Of a stretch of DNA of 64,000 nucleotides, positions 51,001-63,773 are shown one piece after another. The notes under the pieces are model-generated. The model searched no databases. It saw nothing but the letters and a program-made list of their open reading frames with translations, and had not been told where the DNA came from. The number at the start of each line of letters is the position of its first letter. The first letter of the stretch is position 1. The position numbers and the translations under genes are program-made. Source of the DNA: Tubulanus polymorphus (taxonomy: Eukaryota; Animalia; Nemertea); contig NC_134031.1 of NCBI RefSeq assembly GCF_964204645.1, positions 21,510,017-21,574,016 on the forward strand, given 5' to 3'.

Positions 51001-53974
51001 AAAGATACAGATTTTTCTTGCAAAATAGGGTCCTAAAGATGATGAATTCTATCTTAATTGATGGGTTAGGGTGTACTGAACTGATTTCAAATAGATAGGT
51101 TGAAAGATTAAGAATTTTCTGGCTGCTTTTGGTTCTGAAGATGATGGATTCAATCTGAAAAGATGTGTTAAGGCGTATTGAACTGATTTCAAATAGATAG
51201 GTGGAAAGATTAAGAATTTTCTGGCTATTTATGCTCCTGAAGATGATGGACTCGATCTGAAATGATAGGTTAAGGTAAACTGAACTGATTCCGAGCAGAT
51301 GGACTGAAAGATACAGATTTTTCTTGCAAAATAGGGTCCTAAAGATGATGAGTTCTATCTTAATTGATGGGTTAGGGTGTACTGAACTGATTTCAAATAG
51401 ATAGGTGGAAAGATTAAGAATTTTCTGGTTATTTATGCTCCTGAAGATGATGGACTCGATCTGAAATGATAGGTTAAGGTAAACTGAACTGATTTCGAGT
51501 AGATGGACTGAAAGATACAGATTTTTCTTGCAAAATAGGGTCCTAAAGATGATGAGTTCAATCTTAATTGATGGGTTAGGTTGTACTGAACTGATTTCAA
51601 ATAGATAGGTGGAAAGATTAAGAATTTTCTGGTTATTTATGCTCCTGAAGATGATGGACTCGATCTGAAATGATAGGTTAAGGTAAACTGAACTGATTTC
51701 GAGTAGATGGACTGAAAGATACAGATTTTTCTTGCAAAATAGGGTCCTAAAGATGATGAATTCTATCTTAATTGATGGGTTAGGGTGTACTGAACTGATT
51801 TCAAATAGATAGGTTGAAAGAATCAGAATTTTCTGGCTGCTTTTGGTTCTGAAGATGATGGATTCAATCTGCAAAGATGTGTTAAGGCGTATTGAACTGA
51901 TTTCAAATAGATAGGTGGAAAGATTAAGAATTTTCTGGCTATTTATGCTCCTGAAGATGATGGACTCGATCTGAAATGATAGGTTAAGGTAAACTGAACT
52001 GATTTCGAGTAGATGGACTGAAAGATACAGATTTTTCTTGCAAAATAGGGTCCTAAAGATGATGAATTCTATCTTAATTGATGGGTTAGGGTGTACTGAA
52101 CTGATTTCAAATGGATAGGTGGAAAGATTAAGAATTTTCTGGCTATTTATGCTCCTGAAGATGATGGACTCGATCTGAAATGATAGGTTAAGATAAACTG
52201 AACTGATTTCGAGTAGATGGACTGAAAGATACAGATTTTTCTTGCAAAATATGGTCCTAAAGATGATGAGTTCTATCTTAATTGATGGGTTAGGGTGTAC
52301 TGAACTGATTTCAAATAGATAGGTTGAGAGAATCAGAATTTTCTGGCTGCTTTTGGTTCTGAAGATGATGGATTCAATCTGAAAAGATGTGTTAAGGCGT
52401 ATTGAACTGATTTCAAATAGATAGGTGGAAAGATTAAGAATTTTCTGGCTATTTATGCTCCTGAAGATGATGGACTCGTTCTGAAATGATAGGTTAAGGT
52501 AAACTGAACTGATTTCGAGCAGATGGACTGAAAGATACAGATTTTTCTTGCAAAATAGGGTCCTAAAGATGATGAGTTCTATCTTAATTGATGGGTTAGG
52601 GTGTACTGAACTGATTTCAAATAGATAGGTTGAAAGAATCAGAATTTTCTGGCTGCTTTCGGTTCTGAAGATGATGGATTCAATCTGAAAAGATGTGTTA
52701 AGGCGTATTGAACTGATTTCAAATAGATAGGTGGAAAGATTAAGAATTTTCTGGCTATTTATGCTCCTGAAGATGATGGACTCGATCTGAAATGATAGGT
52801 TAAGGTAAACTGAACTGATTTCGAGCAGATGGACTGAAAGATACAGATTTTTCTTGCAAAATAGGGTCCTAAAGATGATGAGTTCTATCTTAATTGATGG
52901 GTTAGGGTGTACTGAACTGATTTCAAATAGATAGGTTGAAAGAATCAGAATTTTCTGGCTGCTTTTGGTCCTGAAGATGATGGATTCAATCTGAAAAGAT
53001 GTGTTAAGGCGTATTGAACTGATTTCAAATAGATAGGTGGAAAGATTAAGAATTTTCTGGCTATTTATGCTCCTGAAGATGATGGACTCGATCTGAAATG
53101 ATAGGTTAAGGTAGACTGAACTGATTTCGAGTAGATGGACTGAAAGATACAGATTTTTCTTGCAAAATAGGGTCCTAAAGATGATGAGTTCTATCTTAAT
53201 TGATGGGTTAGGGTGTACTGAACTGATTTCAAATAGATAGGTTGAAAGAATCAGAATTTTCTGGCTGCTTTTGGTTCTGAAGATGATGGCTTCAATCTGA
53301 AAAGATGGGTTAAGGCGTATTGAACTGATGTCAAATAGATAGGTGGAAAGATTAAGAATTTTCTGGCTATTTATGCTCCTGAAGATGATGGACTCGATCT
53401 GAAATGATAGGTTAAGGTAGACTGAACTGATTTCGAGTAGATGGACTGAAAGATACAGATTTTTCTTGCAAAATAGGGTCCTAAAGATGATGAATTCTAT
53501 CTTAATTGATGGGTTAGGGTGAACTGAACTGATTTCAAATAGATGGGTGGAAAGAATCAGAATTTTCTGGCTGCCTTTGGTTCTGAAGATGATGGACTCA
53601 ATGTGAAAAGATGGGCTGAGGCGTATTGAACTGATTTCAAATAGATAGGTGGAAAGATTAAGAATTTTCTGGCTATTTATGCTCCTGAAGATGATGGACT
53701 CGATCTGAAATGATAGGTTAAGGTAGACTGAACTGATTTCGAGTAGATGGACTGAAAGATACAGATTTTTCTTGCAAAAAAGGGTCCTAAAGATGATGAG
53801 TTCTATCTTAATTGATGGGTTAGGGTGTACTGAACTGATTTCAAATAGATAGGTTGAAAGATTAAGAACTTTCTGGCTGCTTTTGGTTCTGAAGATGATT
53901 GATTCAATCTGAAAAGATGGGTTAAGGCGTATTGAACTGATTTCAAATGGATAGGTGGAAAGAATCAGAATTTT
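1..53974. repeat. Subtelomeric satellite array: about 529 monomers of 102 bp in three types (A 1-102, C 103-204, B 205-306), mostly as 306-bp trimers with A-C 204-bp drop-out variants
   Basis: AGATTAAGAATTTTCTGGCTATTTATGCTCC recurs at 1, 307, 613 and onward. All monomers share TGAACTGATTTC and AAGATGATG. The antisense translation shows a 34-aa period (102 nt). The array starts before the window. Confidence 0.98.
17970..52140. repeat. Two tandem copies of a ~17-kb higher-order satellite block (boundaries approximate)
   Basis: Rare variants recur at fixed offsets. Offset 17546: AAAAAAGGG 18378/35924 and CTGAG 21776/39322. Offset 16628: extra-T run 25913/42541 and CTGCAAAG 35241/51869. The 918-bp difference equals a local duplication in copy 1 (23093/24011). 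Confidence 0.85.
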
Positions 53975-54200
53975 AGGGTTAGGGTTAGGGTTAGGGTTAG
54001 GGTTAGGGTTAGGGTTAGGGTTAGGGTTAGGGTTAGGGTTAGGGTTAGGGTTAGGGTTAGGGTTAGGGTTAGGGTTAGGGTTAGGGTTAGGGTTAGGGTT
54101 AGGGTTAGGGTTAGGGTTAGGGTTAGGGTTAGGGTTAGGGTTAGGGTTAGGGTTAGGGTTAGGGTTAGGGTTAGGGTTAGGGTTAGGGTTAGGGTTAGGG
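53973..54200 (+). repeat. Telomeric tract (TTAGGG)38
   Basis: 228 bp of perfect TTAGGG between the satellite and the retroelement. Confidence 0.99.
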
Positions 54201-55147
54201 TTAGGTTTAGAGATAGAGGTTAGGGGACCAAACCGAAGGTTTGGAGACCCCACTAGTGCACGGGCAGCGGGTTATCCCTGTAAAAAAGTAGTGAGAGTTA
54301 ATTGTTGTAGTGAGGCGGTCTACGGGACGTTCATGCCTCGGGGCGTGTTCGTGTCGAGTCGTCGTATCCAGTCTTGTTCGGCTGCTTCGCGGATCGGTCT
54401 CGTGGAGCCTGGTAGGTGTTGGAGACCGTACACCCGAAAGTGTTCGCGGGTGTGGTCGACTTGGTTGAAGTGGTCCGAGACTGGAGTCGAATTCTTCGTT
54501 CTGATGCGTGAGACGTGATGAGTGACGCGTTCTCGTAGAGACATTCCGGTTTGGCCGACGTACAGCATGTTGCACTTGGTGCATTCGATGCAGTATACAA
54601 TTTCACGGGTCGCGCAATTAATTGTGCTGCGGATCGCGTGCATTTTGTTGTGGCTGCGGCAAACGGTTGTTTCTCGGACGAGTGGACACGTACGACATCT
54701 CGGTGTTCTGCATTTCTCGGTGCCTCGACGTCGGGTTGACGGAGTTCTTTGAGTAGACCTGGAAATAGAAGAATTGGAAACAACGGAAGTATTTCTGTTA
54801 CGATGCGGTGAAGAGGGGACTCGGGGAGGGGGTGGCTCCGTGGGTTTGAGCTGCGACGAAGTTAGGAGATCTTTGAGACTCTTGTGCTTGGTGTAGGCGG
54901 TGACCGTGGTTACCTCGTCAGACCGGCCGGTGGCCGTAGCCAGTTCCGTAAATCTGGTTCGGATGTTACGGGCTAGGGTTCGGTTGGCTTCGGAGTGAGG
55001 TAAGATAAGCGGTAAACGCTTTTTCGGCGGTTCGTCGGCCCGTTGTTGTTCTCGTAGATCTCGTTCGGCGTGGTGCCGTAGAGCTTGGCTTTTGATGTGT
55101 CGCAGTTCGCGGTCTTTGTAGCCACGACCTCTGAGTACTTTAAGGAC
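54199..55147 (-). repeat. 3' pseudo-LTR (direct repeat copy 1, 949 bp)
   Basis: Appears identical to 60540-61488 (offset 6341; the ORF track gives identical peptides in both copies). Confidence 0.93.
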
Positions 55148-56620
55148 GGTTCCGGACGCTGCGTGTAAGTCCGAATCGTTATTGCAGATGCGCCGGAACC
55201 GGAGAATTTGACTTTTAACTATACCGGAAAATGTGTGTTTAGGGTGAAACGAGGATCGATGTAGTAATTGATGCGAATCGGTTGGTTTGAAGTAGACTTT
55301 GGTGTCTACTGTGCCACTTGTCTCGAATCGCGGGCCTTTGAAAGTGGTTACGTCCAGGAAGTTGACGCTGGTGTCGCTGATTTCGAACTTGAGTTTGATG
55401 GATCGGCTCACTGTTTGTAGGACGTCGATGAATTGCATCAACGTTTCGCGGCCGTGTTCCCAAACTATGTAGATGTCGTCGATGAACCGAGCGTATAGCG
55501 ATGGTTGGAGTTCGCTTCTGGACAGACCTTCTTTTTCCCATTCGGCTACAAAGATATTGGCATAAGAAGGAGCAAAACGCTTACCCATTGCGGTACCTTT
55601 TACCTGTAAATATGTGTTTTCGTTAAAGTTAAAGTCATTTTTCTTCAGGCTGATTTCGAGTAGTTTCAGCAGCTCGGCATCCGGGCGTCCCGGGTTCGGG
55701 TTATCTCGGAGAGCTTGTCGGATGCTGGCGATACCCTCTTCGTGGGGGATGTTGGTGTAGAGCGAATCGATGTCCATGGTGACGAGTAACGCATCGGCGC
55801 TAAATTGTTTACCGGCCAAAATATCTAGAAAGTGGTTGGTATCTTTGACGTACGACGGGTGACCGCGGGCGATCGGCTGCAAATAGTAGTCGATCCATTC
55901 CGAAATTTCGTAGGTTTCGGAGCCGCAGTCGGAGACGATCGGTCTCCCCGGCGGTACGCGATCGGGTACCGTCCACTTCTCGCGTTCTTTATGGATTTTG
56001 GGAAGCAGATAGAACTGCCTCTGTTTCGGATTATCGGGCGGTAATAGATATTCGGCGGTTTTTAGCGGGATGATTTTTCGTCGAGCCATATTTTCGATGA
56101 TTTCGCGAATTTCTTCCCCGGTCTGTTCGAAGATCGGTTGCTGCAGCGGCTGATAATACTCGAGATCGGCTAGTTGGCGCATGGCTTCGTGGACGTAGTC
56201 GTCGCGGTCCATGATAACCGTAGCGGAACCCTTATCGGCGGCTTTGATGACAATATTAGTGTTGTCACGCAGCTGCTGGAGGGCTTCGCGTTCCTGTTTA
56301 GTGAGGTTATCATTTACGCGACGCGTATCCCTGGTTTGTTGAGCCAATTCGTGCGCGTCGTTGCAGAACCCGGCGATTACTGGTTCTATTTCATCCGGAG
56401 CCCAACTGCTGGGCAGACGGAAACGCGGAGCCTCGCGGTCCGGTTTGTCTCGGAAGTGATGGTCGAGTTTTACTAGCCGGTTGAATCGGCACACTCCCTT
56501 GGTGCGCTCGGTCGCGGCGGCATCAGAACCGATTTTTGGAGTCGGGCAATAAGTGAGGCCCTTTCGGAGTAGCTGATGTTGCGCCGGACTTAGGCGGAGT
56601 GAACGTGTGAGGTTGACCAC
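54320..56620 (-). CDS. ORF2: Penelope-type reverse transcriptase + CxxxxCxxC linker + GIY-YIG endonuclease (no proximal AUG; frame stays open up to 56812, overlapping the ORF1 end)
   Basis: Motifs: VVNL, KAADKG, FYLLPKIHK, PGRPIVS, TMDIDSLYTNIP, QVKGTAMG..FAPSYANIF, RFIDD, NFLDV, YFKPTD, HP, CRTPRCRTC, IVYCIECTKC..LYVGQT...R..HH...HF...E..WI. Confidence 0.96.
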   Translation of the reverse strand: MVNLTRSLRLSPAQHQLLRKGLTYCPTPKIGSDAAATERTKGVCRFNRLVKLDHHFRDKPDREAPRFRLPSSWAPDEIEPVIAGFCNDAHELAQQTRDTRRVNDNLTKQEREALQQLRDNTNIVIKAADKGSATVIMDRDDYVHEAMRQLADLEYYQPLQQPIFEQTGEEIREIIENMARRKIIPLKTAEYLLPPDNPKQRQFYLLPKIHKEREKWTVPDRVPPGRPIVSDCGSETYEISEWIDYYLQPIARGHPSYVKDTNHFLDILAGKQFSADALLVTMDIDSLYTNIPHEEGIASIRQALRDNPNPGRPDAELLKLLEISLKKNDFNFNENTYLQVKGTAMGKRFAPSYANIFVAEWEKEGLSRSELQPSLYARFIDDIYIVWEHGRETLMQFIDVLQTVSRSIKLKFEISDTSVNFLDVTTFKGPRFETSGTVDTKVYFKPTDSHQLLHRSSFHPKHTFSGIVKSQILRFRRICNNDSDLHAASGTVLKVLRGRGYKDRELRHIKSQALRHHAERDLREQQRADEPPKKRLPLILPHSEANRTLARNIRTRFTELATATGRSDEVTTVTAYTKHKSLKDLLTSSQLKPTEPPPPRVPSSPHRNRNTSVVSNSSISRSTQRTPSTRRRGTEKCRTPRCRTCPLVRETTVCRSHNKMHAIRSTINCATREIVYCIECTKCNMLYVGQTGMSLRERVTHHVSRIRTKNSTPVSDHFNQVDHTREHFRVYGLQHLPGSTRPIREAAEQDWIRRLDTNTPRGMNVP

Positions 56621-56748: not shown

Positions 56749-56785
56749 TAGTGGACCCGTTGGTCTCACTAATACTTAGTTTAAA
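56749..56785 (-). promoter_or_regulatory. Candidate -1 programmed ribosomal frameshift signal (U_UUA_AAC, 7-nt spacer, hairpin)
   Basis: TTTAAAC (56785-56779) is in X_XXY_YYZ register with ORF1, directly before its TAA. Hairpin TAGTG-A-GACC-AACG-GGTC-CACTA spans 56771-56749. ORF2 is in the -1 frame and open through the site. Confidence 0.8.
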
Positions 56786-58332
56786 CCACTGAGCCAGTGG
56801 TCCAGCAGGGTGTTAGCTGTACCACGGTTCCAGTGGATCCCGTCTCCAACAACTCTGAAGCGTCGATCATCGATGGGTGGTATCGCGGTGACGTCGTCGT
56901 GAATCTCGAGGAATTCGTTGAACTTCCGGGCGAACTGCTGGTGTTCGCGGGTCGTGTTGAGTTGAACGAAGTGGACGAACGAGTGCTGATACTTCTTGAC
57001 TGCGGCGTTGATCAGGCGCTGTGTGGTCTTCTTGGCGGTCGCTTCGAAGTTGTTGTCGCGGTTGTTGATTCCGACGCTGATGATCACTGTATCCGGGCGA
57101 TCTCGGCGCTCCGGTACAGCATCGATCAGGTCGGCGAGATGAGCTATCTTGCAGCCGGGGAAGCTCTCGATCTGGACGTCATCCGGACGGCGGCTTGATG
57201 TGATGTTACTCAGATTTGAGTCACCAATCACCAGAATGGGTCGCCGGGTTGGTGGCAGACTCCAATCCTGTTTCTTCCGACCCGTATTCGGATGACGGCG
57301 AACTTCCTGGGGCGCCATCGGTCTCGGTGTTGGCGTCGGACTTCGCGCTGGCAGTAGGCGCCCTGGTGACCTGTAATGAGACGGAGAGCTGGAAAGAGAA
57401 GAAGAGAGAGACGGCGTCGGACTGCTGGTTGGTGCGGTCGGCGTTCTCTGCGGCGGCGGCGTCGGGTTTCGAGGCGGCGGCGTCGGACTTCTCGGTGGCG
57501 TCGGACTTCTTGGTGGCGGCGGCGGCGTCGGCATCGGACTTCTCGGTGGTGGCGCCATTCTGGTTGGTGGCGTCCTGGTGACATCCGCGTAGCTTCTCGG
57601 TGACCTGGAATCAGAAAAAGAAGGAGGCGCTGTGGGCGCGGCGGGCGCGGCTGCGGTTGGTGCAGGCGTCCTCGGCGTCGCGGGCTTTCGAATCTTCCGG
57701 CTCGGTCTCGGCGGCGGACGAATCTTCGGTTCCGTGGGTGCCTCCTGGTGGTGTGACCTGAAATGAGAAGGGGAAGAAGGTGGGTTAGATAGGACATTTC
57801 TGAGTTTGTCAGACAGAGCCTGACCGCGGAATTTCGACCGCAAATCCAGCGCGATGTTGAAAAGCCGGATCGTTCCGGGGCTCAGACGGGAGCCGAAATT
57901 CCTCCGGGCCCATGTCAGGGCGACATCCTGTGCTGATAGACAGTCCGGCAGAGGATCACCCATTAGCTGAACAAATGTGGCAGCGTAATGGATGGTCAGC
58001 TCTTTCGAAACTGTCTCCATCCAGACGTCCGCGGCAGCGTGCAGCTGCACCGTTACTGCTTCGGTGCAAGCCGCCGGCCGCAGGAACATCTTCAGATGGT
58101 CCTTCTTCCTCCGAATCGCTTTCGGACCAGAGCTCAACTGGGCAAGGTGGTGCGCCACTTGAAGAGCTCTATAGTAATTTTTCGGCGACATCCCGGGTTG
58201 CTGGTGTCGCTCAGGGCGTCCTCCGCCCTTGCTGGTCTTCTCAGCTGGTGGTCGTTTCTTCTTTCGAGTAGATCGCTCCATTGACAGATATTTCGGCGAG
58301 GTTGCCTTCGTCAGTGTCAGTGCAGGAATCAT
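56776..58332 (-). CDS. ORF1: N-terminal basic/helical region, Pro/Ser/Thr-rich linker, C-terminal SGNH/GDSL hydrolase (esterase) domain
   Basis: SGNH blocks: ILVIGDSNL (Ser), SFPG, ISVGINN, DGIHW (Asp/His). The true start may be the second AUG at 58281. Confidence 0.88.
   Translation of the reverse strand: MIPALTLTKATSPKYLSMERSTRKKKRPPAEKTSKGGGRPERHQQPGMSPKNYYRALQVAHHLAQLSSGPKAIRRKKDHLKMFLRPAACTEAVTVQLHAAADVWMETVSKELTIHYAATFVQLMGDPLPDCLSAQDVALTWARRNFGSRLSPGTIRLFNIALDLRSKFRGQALSDKLRNVLSNPPSSPSHFRSHHQEAPTEPKIRPPPRPSRKIRKPATPRTPAPTAAAPAAPTAPPSFSDSRSPRSYADVTRTPPTRMAPPPRSPMPTPPPPPRSPTPPRSPTPPPRNPTPPPQRTPTAPTSSPTPSLSSSLSSSPSHYRSPGRLLPARSPTPTPRPMAPQEVRRHPNTGRKKQDWSLPPTRRPILVIGDSNLSNITSSRRPDDVQIESFPGCKIAHLADLIDAVPERRDRPDTVIISVGINNRDNNFEATAKKTTQRLINAAVKKYQHSFVHFVQLNTTREHQQFARKFNEFLEIHDDVTAIPPIDDRRFRVVGDGIHWNRGTANTLLDHWLSGLN
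57410..57555 (-). repeat. Imperfect ~21-27-bp coding minisatellite (PPPRSPT repeats) in the ORF1 linker
   Basis: Repeated GGCGGCGTCGGACTTCT on +; peptide PPPRSPMPTPPPPPRSPTPPRSPTPPPRNPTPPPQRTPT. Confidence 0.75.
58279..58322 (-). ncRNA. Minimal type I hammerhead ribozyme
   Basis: RNA reads cacUGACA-CUGACGA-A-GGC(AACCUC)GCC-GAAA-UAUC^UGUCAaug. Stem I is UGACA/UGUCA, stem II is GGC/GCC, stem III is the loopless palindrome AUAU. Predicted cleavage is after AUC, between 58287 and 58286. This matches the minimal hammerhead form known from PLEs. Confidence 0.85.
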
Positions 58333-58355
58333 GCTGAACTAGGATTAGACACGGG

Positions 58356-58363: not shown

Positions 58364-59710
58364 CACGCAGCGCGCAACAAGTGAACAGTATTTGAGTTAG
58401 AAGTTAAGTGACCATATGAGACCTTGTGATCTAGACTAATTGTACTTCTGTGATCAAGCTAATAGACAAACTAGGGGTCTGACTAATTATGCCTTTGATC
58501 CAGAGTGACTAGAAAACAGCACTAATTATGGCCCTTGATCTAGCTGTTGAATAGTTTGCTTTGATGTATAGTTCTAAAGATCTAAAGAACGGCGTGTCTA
58601 ATATAGAATTGAAAAGTTTATTTCGATATAACCTAATAAATACTCAAAGTGTTTTCTATAAAGAGAAATCTAGAATATGTATTATTAATATACGTGAACC
58701 GGAATGTTCGAAATATGTCCGAGTTCAGTTTCAAAATTGCTTAATTCCTAATTAGTTTAGACGCGTTAATTAGGCGGTGCGCGGCCGAGGCGTATTCCGA
58801 TATACGCGTGTTTACTAAATAGTCGTAAATGGTGAAATCCGGTTCTTAGTTAATCAAGTTTTCTCCGTATTCTAAAGCTTTTAAGAGCGGATTTTGAAAT
58901 ATCTACGCGGTATTCTACCGAAGATTGGATGAATTAGACAGCGCGGCGTCGGCGATTTAGTAGGAAGTTATAACCCGTAAGGTCTAAATTACTGAGTGAG
59001 CGCGGGTGGTTAATTAGCCCTAATTATGGGTGACGAGTTTTGATAGAAATGTCTTACTAATACGTCTGTTTTAATTCTAAGTTCTTAAATATAATTCTAT
59101 TAGATGAACTACGCTTATTTAGAGTTATTAGGATCGAGTAAAGCTATGTGAACTTGAACATGTGACAAATATATTCAGACCGGAGCGCGGGAATTCAGTA
59201 AATCGGTTTAAGCTTGCGTAGTTTGAGTGGTTCAAAAACACTATGATCTCTTCTTTAATCCGAAGGTTGAAATATATACGTGATATAAAACTCTTTTTGA
59301 ATCGGGAATATTGGGCTGTGTTCTTTGGAAAAAAACTGATGAGTTTGAAGGCGTCGTACCTGCGATTTTGTATAGAATTGAGTCGGATAATTAGTCAAGA
59401 GGCGCAGGTGGCCGATCGGTCACTAATTATGAGTGACTTGTAAACAGTGATTGATGTCCGTGGACTATTATTTATCCTATAAACTTCTTATACCTCTACA
59501 ACCTATAGTGCGGTTTTTGAATATAGCTACTAATACTTTTGAGCGATCTCATTAGAATTGTTATCCGAAAATAAACTGTCTGTTTTAGAGAAATTTGAAA
59601 CTTGACACCCGGATCTATATAGAGTATGTTCCGAGAGTTGGCGCGTAGATACGATAATAGTTAATTAGGACGTAGCGGGTTAGGTCCCCGACCGAACGTT
59701 ATAGATTAAA

Positions 59711-60267
59711 CGGAGGTTAATTAGGGTGCCGCGGGTTCGAGTCCCGACCAGGCGCCGTTTAGTAATTGAATAGTTCTATTCTAAATGTTTTTTACCTATT
59801 CTGGATTCCTTTTAATTCTGAATCTTTGACGGATACACTAGTACTTTTCAGATGTTTCTACGATATAATCTTAGTGCCGACGCATATTTTCAAAATAAAT
59901 AAGAGCGGTGGACTGGTTACCGGTATCTAACGCGGGGCACCGGCAACCCGTCAGTACTAGCGGTTAATTTCGGAGCGGCGGGTACGGTTCCCGAGTATTC
60001 TCCGGAGCTTAATTCGGGTGCCGCGGGTTCGAGTCCCGATCAGGCGCGCCGTTTTAGTAATTGAGTATATTCTTACCTATTCTAGATTCCCTTTCTTTCT
60101 AAATTTATAGTAGATTAATTAATACTTTTCGGGTGTTTCTATGATATAATCTCAGTGCTGACGCATATTTTCGAAATAGATGATAGCGGTGGACTGGTTA
60201 CCGGTTTCTATCGTCCTGGGACAGGCAACCAGTCTGTACTAGCGGTTAGGGTTCGGTTCCCGATATC
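59711..60267. repeat. Diverged tandem duplication (~292-bp period), each copy with a B-box/T-arm motif and a conserved hairpin
   Basis: GGGTGCCGCGGGTTCGAGTCCCGA occurs at about 59724 and 60016; AGCGGTGGACTGGTTACCGGT...GTACTAGCGGTTA is present in both copies. Confidence 0.85.
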
Positions 60268-60539
60268 GCGCTTTTGTTTATTTTTCTAACTGTTTCTGAT
60301 ATTTGGTCTGTCTTCTTACTTACTGAATTTCGATTGAGTTTTCAAAGTAAAGCAGAGAGAACTAATTAAAAGATAAAAGGTTGATGATTCCTGTGGAGCT
60401 TGTGATCTTGGAGTTTGTTTTGTACTCTGTCTCTGAGCGGGTTTCTGCTTCAGGCGACGGAGGATGATTCTGCAAATAGATTGATGATTAATAATTAATC
60501 AGTTAAGATAATTTACGAGGGAAACCTGGCACGGGCTAA

Positions 60540-61488
60540 GGTTAGGTTTAGAGATAGAGGTTAGGGGACCAAACCGAAGGTTTGGAGACCCCACTAGTGC
60601 ACGGGCAGCGGGTTATCCCTGTAAAAAAGTAGTGAGAGTTAATTGTTGTAGTGAGGCGGTCTACGGGACGTTCATGCCTCGGGGCGTGTTCGTGTCGAGT
60701 CGTCGTATCCAGTCTTGTTCGGCTGCTTCGCGGATCGGTCTCGTGGAGCCTGGTAGGTGTTGGAGACCGTACACCCGAAAGTGTTCGCGGGTGTGGTCGA
60801 CTTGGTTGAAGTGGTCCGAGACTGGAGTCGAATTCTTCGTTCTGATGCGTGAGACGTGATGAGTGACGCGTTCTCGTAGAGACATTCCGGTTTGGCCGAC
60901 GTACAGCATGTTGCACTTGGTGCATTCGATGCAGTATACAATTTCACGGGTCGCGCAATTAATTGTGCTGCGGATCGCGTGCATTTTGTTGTGGCTGCGG
61001 CAAACGGTTGTTTCTCGGACGAGTGGACACGTACGACATCTCGGTGTTCTGCATTTCTCGGTGCCTCGACGTCGGGTTGACGGAGTTCTTTGAGTAGACC
61101 TGGAAATAGAAGAATTGGAAACAACGGAAGTATTTCTGTTACGATGCGGTGAAGAGGGGACTCGGGGAGGGGGTGGCTCCGTGGGTTTGAGCTGCGACGA
61201 AGTTAGGAGATCTTTGAGACTCTTGTGCTTGGTGTAGGCGGTGACCGTGGTTACCTCGTCAGACCGGCCGGTGGCCGTAGCCAGTTCCGTAAATCTGGTT
61301 CGGATGTTACGGGCTAGGGTTCGGTTGGCTTCGGAGTGAGGTAAGATAAGCGGTAAACGCTTTTTCGGCGGTTCGTCGGCCCGTTGTTGTTCTCGTAGAT
61401 CTCGTTCGGCGTGGTGCCGTAGAGCTTGGCTTTTGATGTGTCGCAGTTCGCGGTCTTTGTAGCCACGACCTCTGAGTACTTTAAGGAC
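60540..61488 (-). repeat. 5' pseudo-LTR (5'-truncated tandem copy of the PLE 3' end)
   Basis: Matches 54199-55147; ends abruptly at ...TTAAGGAC, followed by TAGGG(TTAGGG)n. Confidence 0.93.
60661..61488 (-). pseudogene. Truncated ORF2 copy (end of thumb region, Cys linker, complete GIY-YIG domain)
   Basis: Duplicate of 54320-55147; ORF-track entry 60661-60984 is the GIY-YIG portion. Confidence 0.88.
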
Positions 61489-62566
61489 TAGGGTTAGGGT
61501 TAGGGTTAGGGTTAGGGTTAGGGTTAGGGTTAGGGTTAGGGTTAGGGTTAGGGTTAGGGTTAGGGTTAGGGTTAGGGTTAGGGTTAGGGTTAGGGTTAGG
61601 GTTAGGGTTAGGGTTAGGGTTAGGGTTAGGGTTAGGGTTAGGGTTAGGGTTAGGGTTAGGGTTAGGGTTAGGGTTAGGGTTAGGGTTAGGGTTAGGGTTA
61701 GGGTTAGGGTTAGGGTTAGGGTTGGGTTAGGGTTAGGGTTAGGGTTAGGGTTAGGTTAGGGTTAGGGTTAGGGTTAGGGTTAGGGTTAGGGTTAGGGTTA
61801 GGGTTAGGGTTAGGGTTAGGGTTAGGGTTAGGGTTAGGGTTAGGGTTAGGGTTAGGGTTAGGGTTAGGGTTAGGGTTAGGGTTAGGGTTAGGGTTAGGGT
61901 TAGGGTTAGGGTTAGGGTTAGGGTTAGGGTTAGGTTAGGGTTAGGGTTAGGGTTAGGGTTAGGGTTAGGGTTAGGGTTAGGGTTAGGGTTAGGGTTAGGG
62001 TTAGGGTTAGGGTTAGGGTTAGGGTTAGGGTTAGGGTTAGGGTTAGGGTTAGGGTTAGGGTTAGGGTTAGGGTTAGGGTTAGGGTTAGGGTTAGGGTTAG
62101 GGTTAGGGTTAGGGTTAGGGTTAGGGTTAGGGTTAGGGTTAGGGTTAGGGTTAGGGTTGGGTTAGGGTTAGGGTTAGGGTTAGGGTTAGGGTTAGGGTTA
62201 GGGTTAGGGTTAGGGTTAGGGTTAGGGTTAGGGTTAGGGTTAGGGTTAGGGTTAGGGTTAGGGTTAGGGTTAGGGTTAGGGTTGGGTTAGGGTTAGGGTT
62301 AGGGTTAGGGTTAGGGTTAGGGTTAGGGTTAGGGTTAGGGTTAGGGTTAGGGTTAGGGTTAGGGTTAGGGTTAGGGTTAGGGTTAGGGTTAGGGTTAGGG
62401 TTAGGGTTAGGGTTAGGGTTAGGGTTAGGGTTAGGGTTAGGGTTAGGGTTAGGGTTAGGGTTAGGGTTAGGGTTAGGGTTAGGGTTAGGGTTGGTTAGGG
62501 TTAGGGTTAGGGTTAGGGTTAGGGTTAGGGTTAGGGTTAGGGTTAGGGTTAGGGTTAGGGTTAGGG
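61489..62566 (+). repeat. Telomeric tract, about 180 TTAGGG units with six short deletion variants
   Basis: 1078 bp. Variants: TTGGG (61722, 62157, 62282), TTAGG (61751, 61930), TTGG (62491). Confidence 0.99.
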
Positions 62567-62768
62567 TTAGGTTTAGAGGTATAGGTTAGGGGAACCAATC
62601 AGAGTATCAATTAATGTTTTTGTGTTCTTCAGATTAACCCACCACAATTAATCGAGAGTAATTAACTGATATCTTTTCAGAACCCCACTGTGACACTGGC
62701 AGCGGGAAAGCCGGCTAACTCCACCTGCCGGAAGGTATTAGAGTTAGGGATACCGAAAAGCAATCCAC

Positions 62769-62841
62769 CACCTAGACCGGGACTCGAACACCGGACCTTT
62801 CGTTTGCCGGACGACTGCTCTACCGATTGAGCTACCTGGGC
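62769..62841 (-). pseudogene. tRNA-derived domain (pseudo-tRNA, nominal anticodon GGC), copy 1
   Basis: GCCCAGG-TA-GCTCAATCGGTAGAGC-A-GTCGT-CCGGCAA-ACGAA-AGGT-CCGGTG-TTCGAGT-CCCGG-TCTAGGT-G. A box and B box core are intact. There is a C33, a C-A acceptor mismatch and a bulged T-stem. Confidence 0.85.
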
Positions 62842-63103
62842 GGACCGACGATTGCTCTCGGTTTCACCTCTATCTCCGTGCTTTCCTGGCACTGGTCGGG
62901 GTTAGGTTTAGAGGTATAGGTTAGGGGAACCAATCAGAGTATCAATTAATGTTTTTGTGTTCTTCAGATTAACCCACCACAATTAATCGAGAGTAATTAA
63001 CTGATATCTTTTCAGAACCCCACTGTGACACTGGCAGCGGGAAAGCCGGCTAACTCCACCTGCCGGAAGGTATTAGAGTTAGGGATACCGAAAAGCAATC
63101 CAC

Positions 63104-63176: not shown

Positions 63177-63438
63177 GGACCGACGATTGCTCTCGGTTTC
63201 ACCTCTATCTCCGTGCTTTCCTGGCACTGGTCGGGGTTAGGTTTAGAGGTATAGGTTAGGGGAACCAATCAGAGTATCAATTAATGTTTTTGTGTTCTTC
63301 AGATTAACCCACCACAATTAATCGAGAGTAATTAACTGATATCTTTTCAGAACCCCACTGTGACACTGGCAGCGGGAAAGCCGGCTAACTCCACCTGCCG
63401 GAAGGTATTAGAGTTAGGGATACCGAAAAGCAATCCAC

Positions 63439-63511: not shown

Positions 63512-63773
63512 GGACCGACGATTGCTCTCGGTTTCACCTCTATCTCCGTGCTTTCCTGGCACTGGTCGGGGTTAGGTTTAGAGGTATAGGTTAGGGGAAC
63601 CAATCAGAGTATCAATTAATGTTTTTGTGTTCTTCAGATTAACCCACCACAATTAATCGAGAGTAATTAACTGATATCTTTTCAGAACCCCACTGTGACA
63701 CTGGCAGCGGGAAAGCCGGCTAACTCCACCTGCCGGAAGGTATTAGAGTTAGGGATACCGAAAAGCAATCCAC

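Follow-up and report, generated by a model that had tools for sequence, protein, structure and literature searches.

How the reverse transcriptase (RT) of Penelope-like elements (PLEs) recognizes its RNA and chooses where to start is largely an open question in the field. We found one study of PLE RT biochemistry, on Poseidon PAc, a member of a different clade in which initiation is internal: the RT starts within the RNA at a structured site, an AC-rich stem-loop inside the ORF, no homology to the target is seen, and a tail of ~30-40 nt is left (PMC11167929). In Terminon/Athena elements, according to PMC6431247 and PMC8557442, the 3' end carries a hammerhead together with reverse-complement telomere repeats, the fold exposes a short telomere-complementary stretch to the G-rich end, and 5'-truncated copies are stacked between telomere repeats. 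The endonuclease-bearing (EN+) Neptune and Nematis elements have, according to PMC8557442 and PMC3846280, a C-terminal GIY-YIG domain, a cysteine linker between RT and endonuclease and a bias for simple repeats. Telomerase RNA keeps a single-stranded C-rich stretch for primer alignment within a loop that a long-range helix closes; synthesis is stopped by a boundary element, and the templates of TTAGGG telomerases span 1.5-2 repeats (PMC4993307).

Here we describe an RNA module of PLE-A, an element of the ribbon worm Tubulanus polymorphus. The window, the whole stretch of 64,000 nucleotides that was analysed, is a contig end in a 268-Mb assembly and opens with 54 kb of satellite, after which come a (TTAGGG)n tract that is the target of PLE-A (53973-54205, plus strand), PLE-A itself on the minus strand, a 5'-truncated second copy, a second (TTAGGG)n tract that caps truncated PLE-A and is also the target of a passenger (61489-62571, plus strand), and 335-bp units in an array. 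Intact copies are mostly found near the ends of contigs. The census of module-bearing families in this genome is incomplete and counts at least four, PLE-A, PLE-B, SINE-A and SINE-B. PLE-A also lands in long degenerate telomere-like arrays (L011:3930-4500 and L035), and two further contig ends of the same genome (L056, L057) hold a different subtelomeric element with a tRNA-like segment and degenerate telomere repeats at the end, in which the module was not seen. Three other sequencing runs of the species, one of them guessed to be RNA, contain no reads matching the element.

Like Terminon/Athena, PLE-A leaves 5'-truncated copies stacked between telomere repeats, its junctions show homology with G-rich telomere repeats, and its module would expose a short telomere-complementary stretch to a G-rich end. 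Compared with the elements described in PMC6431247 and PMC8557442, it differs in that no hammerhead stands directly before this stretch (there is no Rfam match, and a hammerhead-like core lies 2.2 kb away), in that a GIY-YIG endonuclease is fused to the RT, and in that the stretch is placed within a closed loop of a fold that relatives put to microsatellites. The missing adjacent hammerhead and the presence of the endonuclease rule out Terminon-type membership. ORF2 (766 aa; 54320-56620, minus strand) comprises the RT, the linker and the endonuclease. The GIY-YIG domain scores 21.3 bits, just below the cut-off of 22.6, with its motifs discernible in the sequence; its CCHH residues C680, C683, H702 and H717 are invariant across 34 sequences, and the CX2-5CxxC linker is present as C637-x4-C642-xx-C645. 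Judged by these motifs, PLE-A is an element with the EN+ features of the Neptune/Nematis type, a C-terminal GIY-YIG domain with CCHH and a cysteine linker, and it shares their simple-repeat bias. A separate esterase-like ORF1, telomere targeting and an RNA module, all found in PLE-A, go unmentioned for Neptune and Nematis in the excerpts of PMC8557442 and PMC3846280. ORF1 of PLE-A itself (518 aa; 56776-58332, minus strand) has no Pfam match, and the gene at the same position in relatives matches Lipase_GDSL_2.

The module of PLE-A is read from the minus strand. Its outer helix, P1, has its 5' strand at 60611-60619 and its 3' strand at 60519-60526. Between them lie the 5' octamer GCCxGUGC of the conserved core (60599-60606), an optional arm made of a GGGG/CCCC helix and a hairpin, which most homologues are without (60564-60592), a degenerate telomere-like loop stretch that is copied into every insertion (60547-60563), the motif CCUAACC, at which target homology ends and a primer would anneal and be extended (60540-60546), and the 3' octamer (60529-60536). 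A tail zone follows outside P1 (60482-60518). Positions 54199-54278 of the same strand contain a second module of PLE-A, which is cut at CCUAACC, where telomere repeats adjoin. Every full module has the order P1, a short bulge (1-2 nt), GCCxGUGC, loop, GCCxGUGC and P1', the loop measuring 24-144 nt and ~440 nt in one case. From comparison of the homologues, the core of the module is a covarying P1 plus two GCCxGUGC octamers that pair antiparallel and close a variable loop. We consider it likely that the module is a cis-acting element on which the RT docks and starts, in one clade of two-ORF endonuclease-bearing PLEs.

A sequence-only reading had proposed a structured RNA common to PLE-A (60525-60612) and the 335-bp element (62885-63041). 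Both strings that it quoted are exact on the minus strand, and the two blocks that they share are alike beyond chance: their local score is 56, and none of 200 resampled sequences exceeded 34. In BLAST, the 3' block has an E value of 2e-9 and the 5' block one of 0.024. The elements were held to be otherwise unrelated and elsewhere have just 11-21-nt matches, at E >= 0.29. The annealing overlap with telomere DNA is as proposed, 7 nt in PLE-A (60540-60546) and 8 nt in the 335-bp element, and covariation among homologues, which the structure had been expected to show, is present in P1 and in mirrored octamer changes. P1 of PLE-A sits just outside the interval 60525-60612, which folds no better than shuffles (z -0.9; -2.25 with flanks), and the sequence of P1 differs from family to family. 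Other parts of the proposal fell away. The GGGG/CCCC helix, taken for the core, occurs in 4 of 36 loops, all from this genome, and 19 of the 36 contain no helix below -5 kcal/mol; the hexamer present twice, said to co-vary, is identical in 6 of 35 cases, against 5.7 expected after shuffling (p=0.53).

The strands of P1 pair at -16.2 kcal/mol with their own partners and at -6.7 kcal/mol with swapped ones, and the own partner comes first in 25 of 35 cases, figures that are somewhat inflated by selection on energy. Of the cells in the model-fitted alignment, 73% pair, a share that drops to 61% with shuffling and to 32-47% with sliding; RNAalifold on a MAFFT alignment returned no consensus structure. 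The octamers would form two pairs at each end and a symmetric 4x4 centre with C.U and x.G appositions, position x being hardly ever G. Because octamers that pair antiparallel should change in mirrored fashion, their natural variants are informative: position 7 with 2' changes from G-C to A-U in L083/L084 and independently, on a separate branch, in L088, position 8 with 1' changes from C-G to U-A in SINE-A, and single changes yield G-U pairs in L073, L115, L123 and L164. L102 and L100, read by eye and never filtered on pairing, both have the U-A change, and L100 has both changes. No change falls at the same position in both copies, and copy-to-copy identity is at chance level. These observations argue against the view that P1 holds together two unpaired octamers, which would serve as parallel single-stranded binding sites (of an RT dimer, for instance). 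We find that view unlikely, although one consensus is common to both octamers and the inner pairs are often open in minimum-energy folds; unless protein is present, the inner 2-bp octamer helices are in fact unstable, at a cost of 2-7 kcal/mol in five of the six cases. Given that the first scans selected on pairing, the finding that 35 of 35 are paired is circular, and scans with the inner pairs left free have a high background (10 of 45 antisense matches paired, 11 of 28 sense) and offer no clean test. Post hoc, all 12 sense matches with a CUAA/CUA-type loop end are paired, two of them after a 1-nt insertion.

The module lies 3' of the RT gene in more than 35 PLEs from unrelated genomes and metagenomes, and the RT cores of its carriers are 41-66% identical to that of PLE-A; PLE-B, a second autonomous family in the same genome, is 51% identical and carries it as well. 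Among metagenome contigs, a scan turned up 80 related RT loci, many with the module shortly past the RT stop codon. A covariance model trained on 22 of the loci produced 33 matches, every one on the sense strand of the element, and recovered members absent from the training alignment (L101, L103, L107, L060, L071 and SINE-B, later L142 and L186). In a FastTree phylogeny all module carriers fall inside one branch of 72 rows with SH-like support of 87, and the 22 rows outside this branch gave zero matches to the model. No relatives were found in the viral contigs searched. Telomere attachment by endonuclease-bearing PLEs recurs in a broad clade and is no quirk of a single ribbon worm. A description of the fold was found neither in Rfam nor in the papers searched; on this footing, the cross-species spread, the antiparallel core and the link between loop and target appear to be new. 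Long contigs from other samples (L161/L162, L163) hold similar PLEs stacked with telomere repeats; the loop of ~440 nt belongs to L161, and ORF1 of L163 has a NADAR domain. One subclade (L112, L115, L117, L123, L129) has a GGGGGCG-type P1 and a diverged, more fully paired core. Downstream of one module-bearing element lies a satellite of GCCAGTG-containing units (L060:8100-8867). Nineteen PLE RT loci sit within bacterial genome bins (L142-L160) and are most probably eukaryotic contamination.

Judged by the junctions, the cDNA starts inside the RNA, at the 3' end of the loop. In 17 of the 18 distinct PLE-A flanks, 3 nt separate the end of target homology from the 3' octamer, and in eight families (PLE-A, PLE-B, SINE-A, SINE-B, L074, L070/L080, L090/L083 and L163) the junction falls 0-4 nt before this octamer. 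Reads of an independent DNA run show a four- to fivefold step up in depth at the start site and have loose ends at 60540 and 60533. Those of the 60533 class are telomere DNA that aligns across two differences, so the RNA-DNA hybrid of PLE-A could reach 14 bp with two wobbles and would then enter the 3' octamer, in PLE-A only and not as a general feature. The joints of other copies fall at 60482-60509, just past P1, which suggests RNAs that run past P1 and include the whole module; the PLE tail, as described in PMC11167929 and PMC8557442, matches this extension. As in PAc (PMC11167929), the start lies within the RNA at a structured site and leaves a tail, whereas in PLE-A it lies in the 3' UTR/pseudo-LTR and matches the target. 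Very probably, the module marks where the RT binds and where copying starts. We propose that the RT would bind P1 and the octamer core, that a G-rich 3' end, coming either from a chromosome end fresh from telomerase extension or from a GIY-YIG nick, would anneal to CCUAACC, and that the RT would then copy towards the 5' end, first loop and arm, then the 5' octamer and what remains of the element.

The sequence-only reading had called the module the RT-recognition element and had given it the layout of telomerase RNA, a boundary helix followed by a template. What stands of this is that a cis-element, conserved and covarying, sets the priming site and is probably what the RT recognizes; the telomerase layout was not borne out. 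Insertions do not stop at the arm helix, the 5' octamer or P1 but reach the ORF and continue for kilobases, and since inserted copies run through the helix, the boundary reading fails. The likeness to the telomerase core is one of topology only: unlike telomerase RNA (PMC4993307), the module has no boundary function, no pseudoknot was seen in it, there is no evidence of reiteration, and its RNA copies itself. We therefore hold it very improbable that the module is a telomerase-like unit, with the helix as template boundary and CUAACC copied reiteratively into telomere repeats. All helices are read through by the RT, and modules can do without the arm helix; the tracts consist of canonical TTAGGG, with no tandem re-copied loop units; the same fold serves non-telomeric targets; and the perfect match covers just 7-8 nt, a template of ~1.2 repeats against the 1.5-2 repeats plus alignment region of TTAGGG telomerases (PMC4993307). 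Such a unit would suit the position of PLE RTs as the sister group of TERT (PMC8557442), CCUAACC could template TTAGGG with a 1-nt realignment, and the spacers between stacked copies (L011-L041, L058, L141) most often hold exactly two repeats beyond the overlap (11 of 27). Spacers of 1-2 repeats are assignable to neither enzyme, no re-copied degenerate units were found, and two-repeat spacers fit addition onto freshly healed ends. For the question of how an internal template to which a primer anneals arose in the sister group of telomerase, the module is a concrete point of comparison.

Does the RNA or the protein choose the target? In the sequences compared, the end of the loop changes along with the target repeat from branch to branch of the tree, for microsatellites at clade level only. 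Loops ending in CUAACC match the TTAGGG target, and telomere repeats are joined to truncated modules in L049, L070, L074, L091, L092, L161 and L163, whereas microsatellites are joined to them in L094 ((TACA)n), L086 ((CT)n) and L059 ((TAC)n). L094 belongs to a branch of support 100, other members of which have full loops with ACAUAC or ACACAC at the end; no microsatellite family was seen both whole and at a junction, hence the restriction to clades. On the one hand, the fold may bind the RT and set the start while targeting is set wholly by protein, namely endonuclease and zinc linker, the loop match merely stabilising the primer or having been acquired from earlier targets. This is a real possibility, though we lean against it: the GIY-YIG domain is retained, the zinc linker has been proposed as the source of the microsatellite bias of Neptune (PMC8557442), the Poseidon RT primes without homology (PMC11167929), and some old interior copies are without telomere repeats (L044, L045), yet in eight families the point at which homology ends is fixed with respect to the fold, and the loop end changes with the target across the tree. 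On the other hand, the loop may be a built-in guide, in which a clamp loads a TERT-related RT while an exchangeable sequence pairs with the DNA and decides which repeat is used. We put this forward tentatively, as a somewhat doubtful extension of the docking and start element; if true, the retroelement would be one that can be retargeted and would serve as a living model of how retroelement RNA became a telomerase template. With a substrate of ~80 nt, natural compensatory variants, a mapped start and target swaps at hand, recognition and targeting are directly testable.

SINEs can share the 3' stem-loop of a LINE, its RT-recognition end. The module accounts in a comparable way for tRNA-bearing passengers riding on PLEs, which would be mobilised because they carry the same core. 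SINE-A, the 335-bp passenger of the window, has the 3' part that is common to its partner retroelement: a full module with its own P1 and a 131-nt loop lies at 62880-63046 on the minus strand (repeated at 63215-63381 and 63550-63716), and another, cut at the annealing site and joined to telomere repeats, at 62565-62711 on the same strand. Each unit contains one tRNA-like segment (62769-62841, minus strand; Rfam RF00005, 43 bits), in which A and B boxes are present as read from the alignment. A second passenger of the same genome, SINE-B, is 353 bp long and carries the module. As in LINE/SINE pairs, and as in the non-autonomous elements of Chlamys and retrozymes (PMC8557442, bioRxiv 10.64898/2026.07.22.740005), the passenger copies the RT-recognition end; the present case differs in that what is shared is a clamp of two parts enclosing an arm that can be replaced, and in that a tRNA-like segment replaces the hammerhead. 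UUUU stands directly past the tRNA segment in both passengers (window ~62755-62758; L058), so that Pol III would need to read through, or else multimers are cut ~40 nt past P1, with the tRNA fold as the processing signal. Beside a SINE-A array, a 46-nt fragment of PLE-B consisting of arm and loop only lies between telomere repeats (L141).

The symmetric core might itself be a self-cleaving ribozyme or processing signal that makes the RNA end where copying starts, which we regard as quite improbable. Ribozymes are common in PLE pseudo-LTRs (PMC4209133), Terminons place a ribozyme fold beside the telomere-matching stretch (PMC6431247), and the non-canonical loop of the module is conserved. Set against this, the joints past P1 imply RNAs that retain the whole module, a separate hammerhead-like core lies 2.2 kb away, and Rfam, a search of which the sequence-only reading had suggested, gave no match to a known RNA family or ribozyme at E <= 1 for the window module and seven homologous loci. 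The hammerhead-like core, read from the sequence and left unscored by Rfam, is at the start of ORF1 (58282-58319, minus strand). 5' truncations of PLE-A (window 58332-58333; L014, L027, L040) cluster at the ORF1 start codon, with a depth step, and suggest a shorter RNA beginning there; the cut predicted for the hammerhead, near 58286, is not the site of this cluster. An AG stands ten bases upstream of ORF1, and immediately behind it, at window position 58342, reads run off into unrelated sequence, possibly a spliced or chimeric form. Polypyrimidine-CAG motifs that resemble 3' splice sites recur on the sense strand of PLE-A at 54756, 56688, 57386, 57602 and 61097. The 5' UTR of PLE-A contains a 281-nt internal duplication (window 59655-60250), with B-box-like T-arm motifs on the opposite strand.
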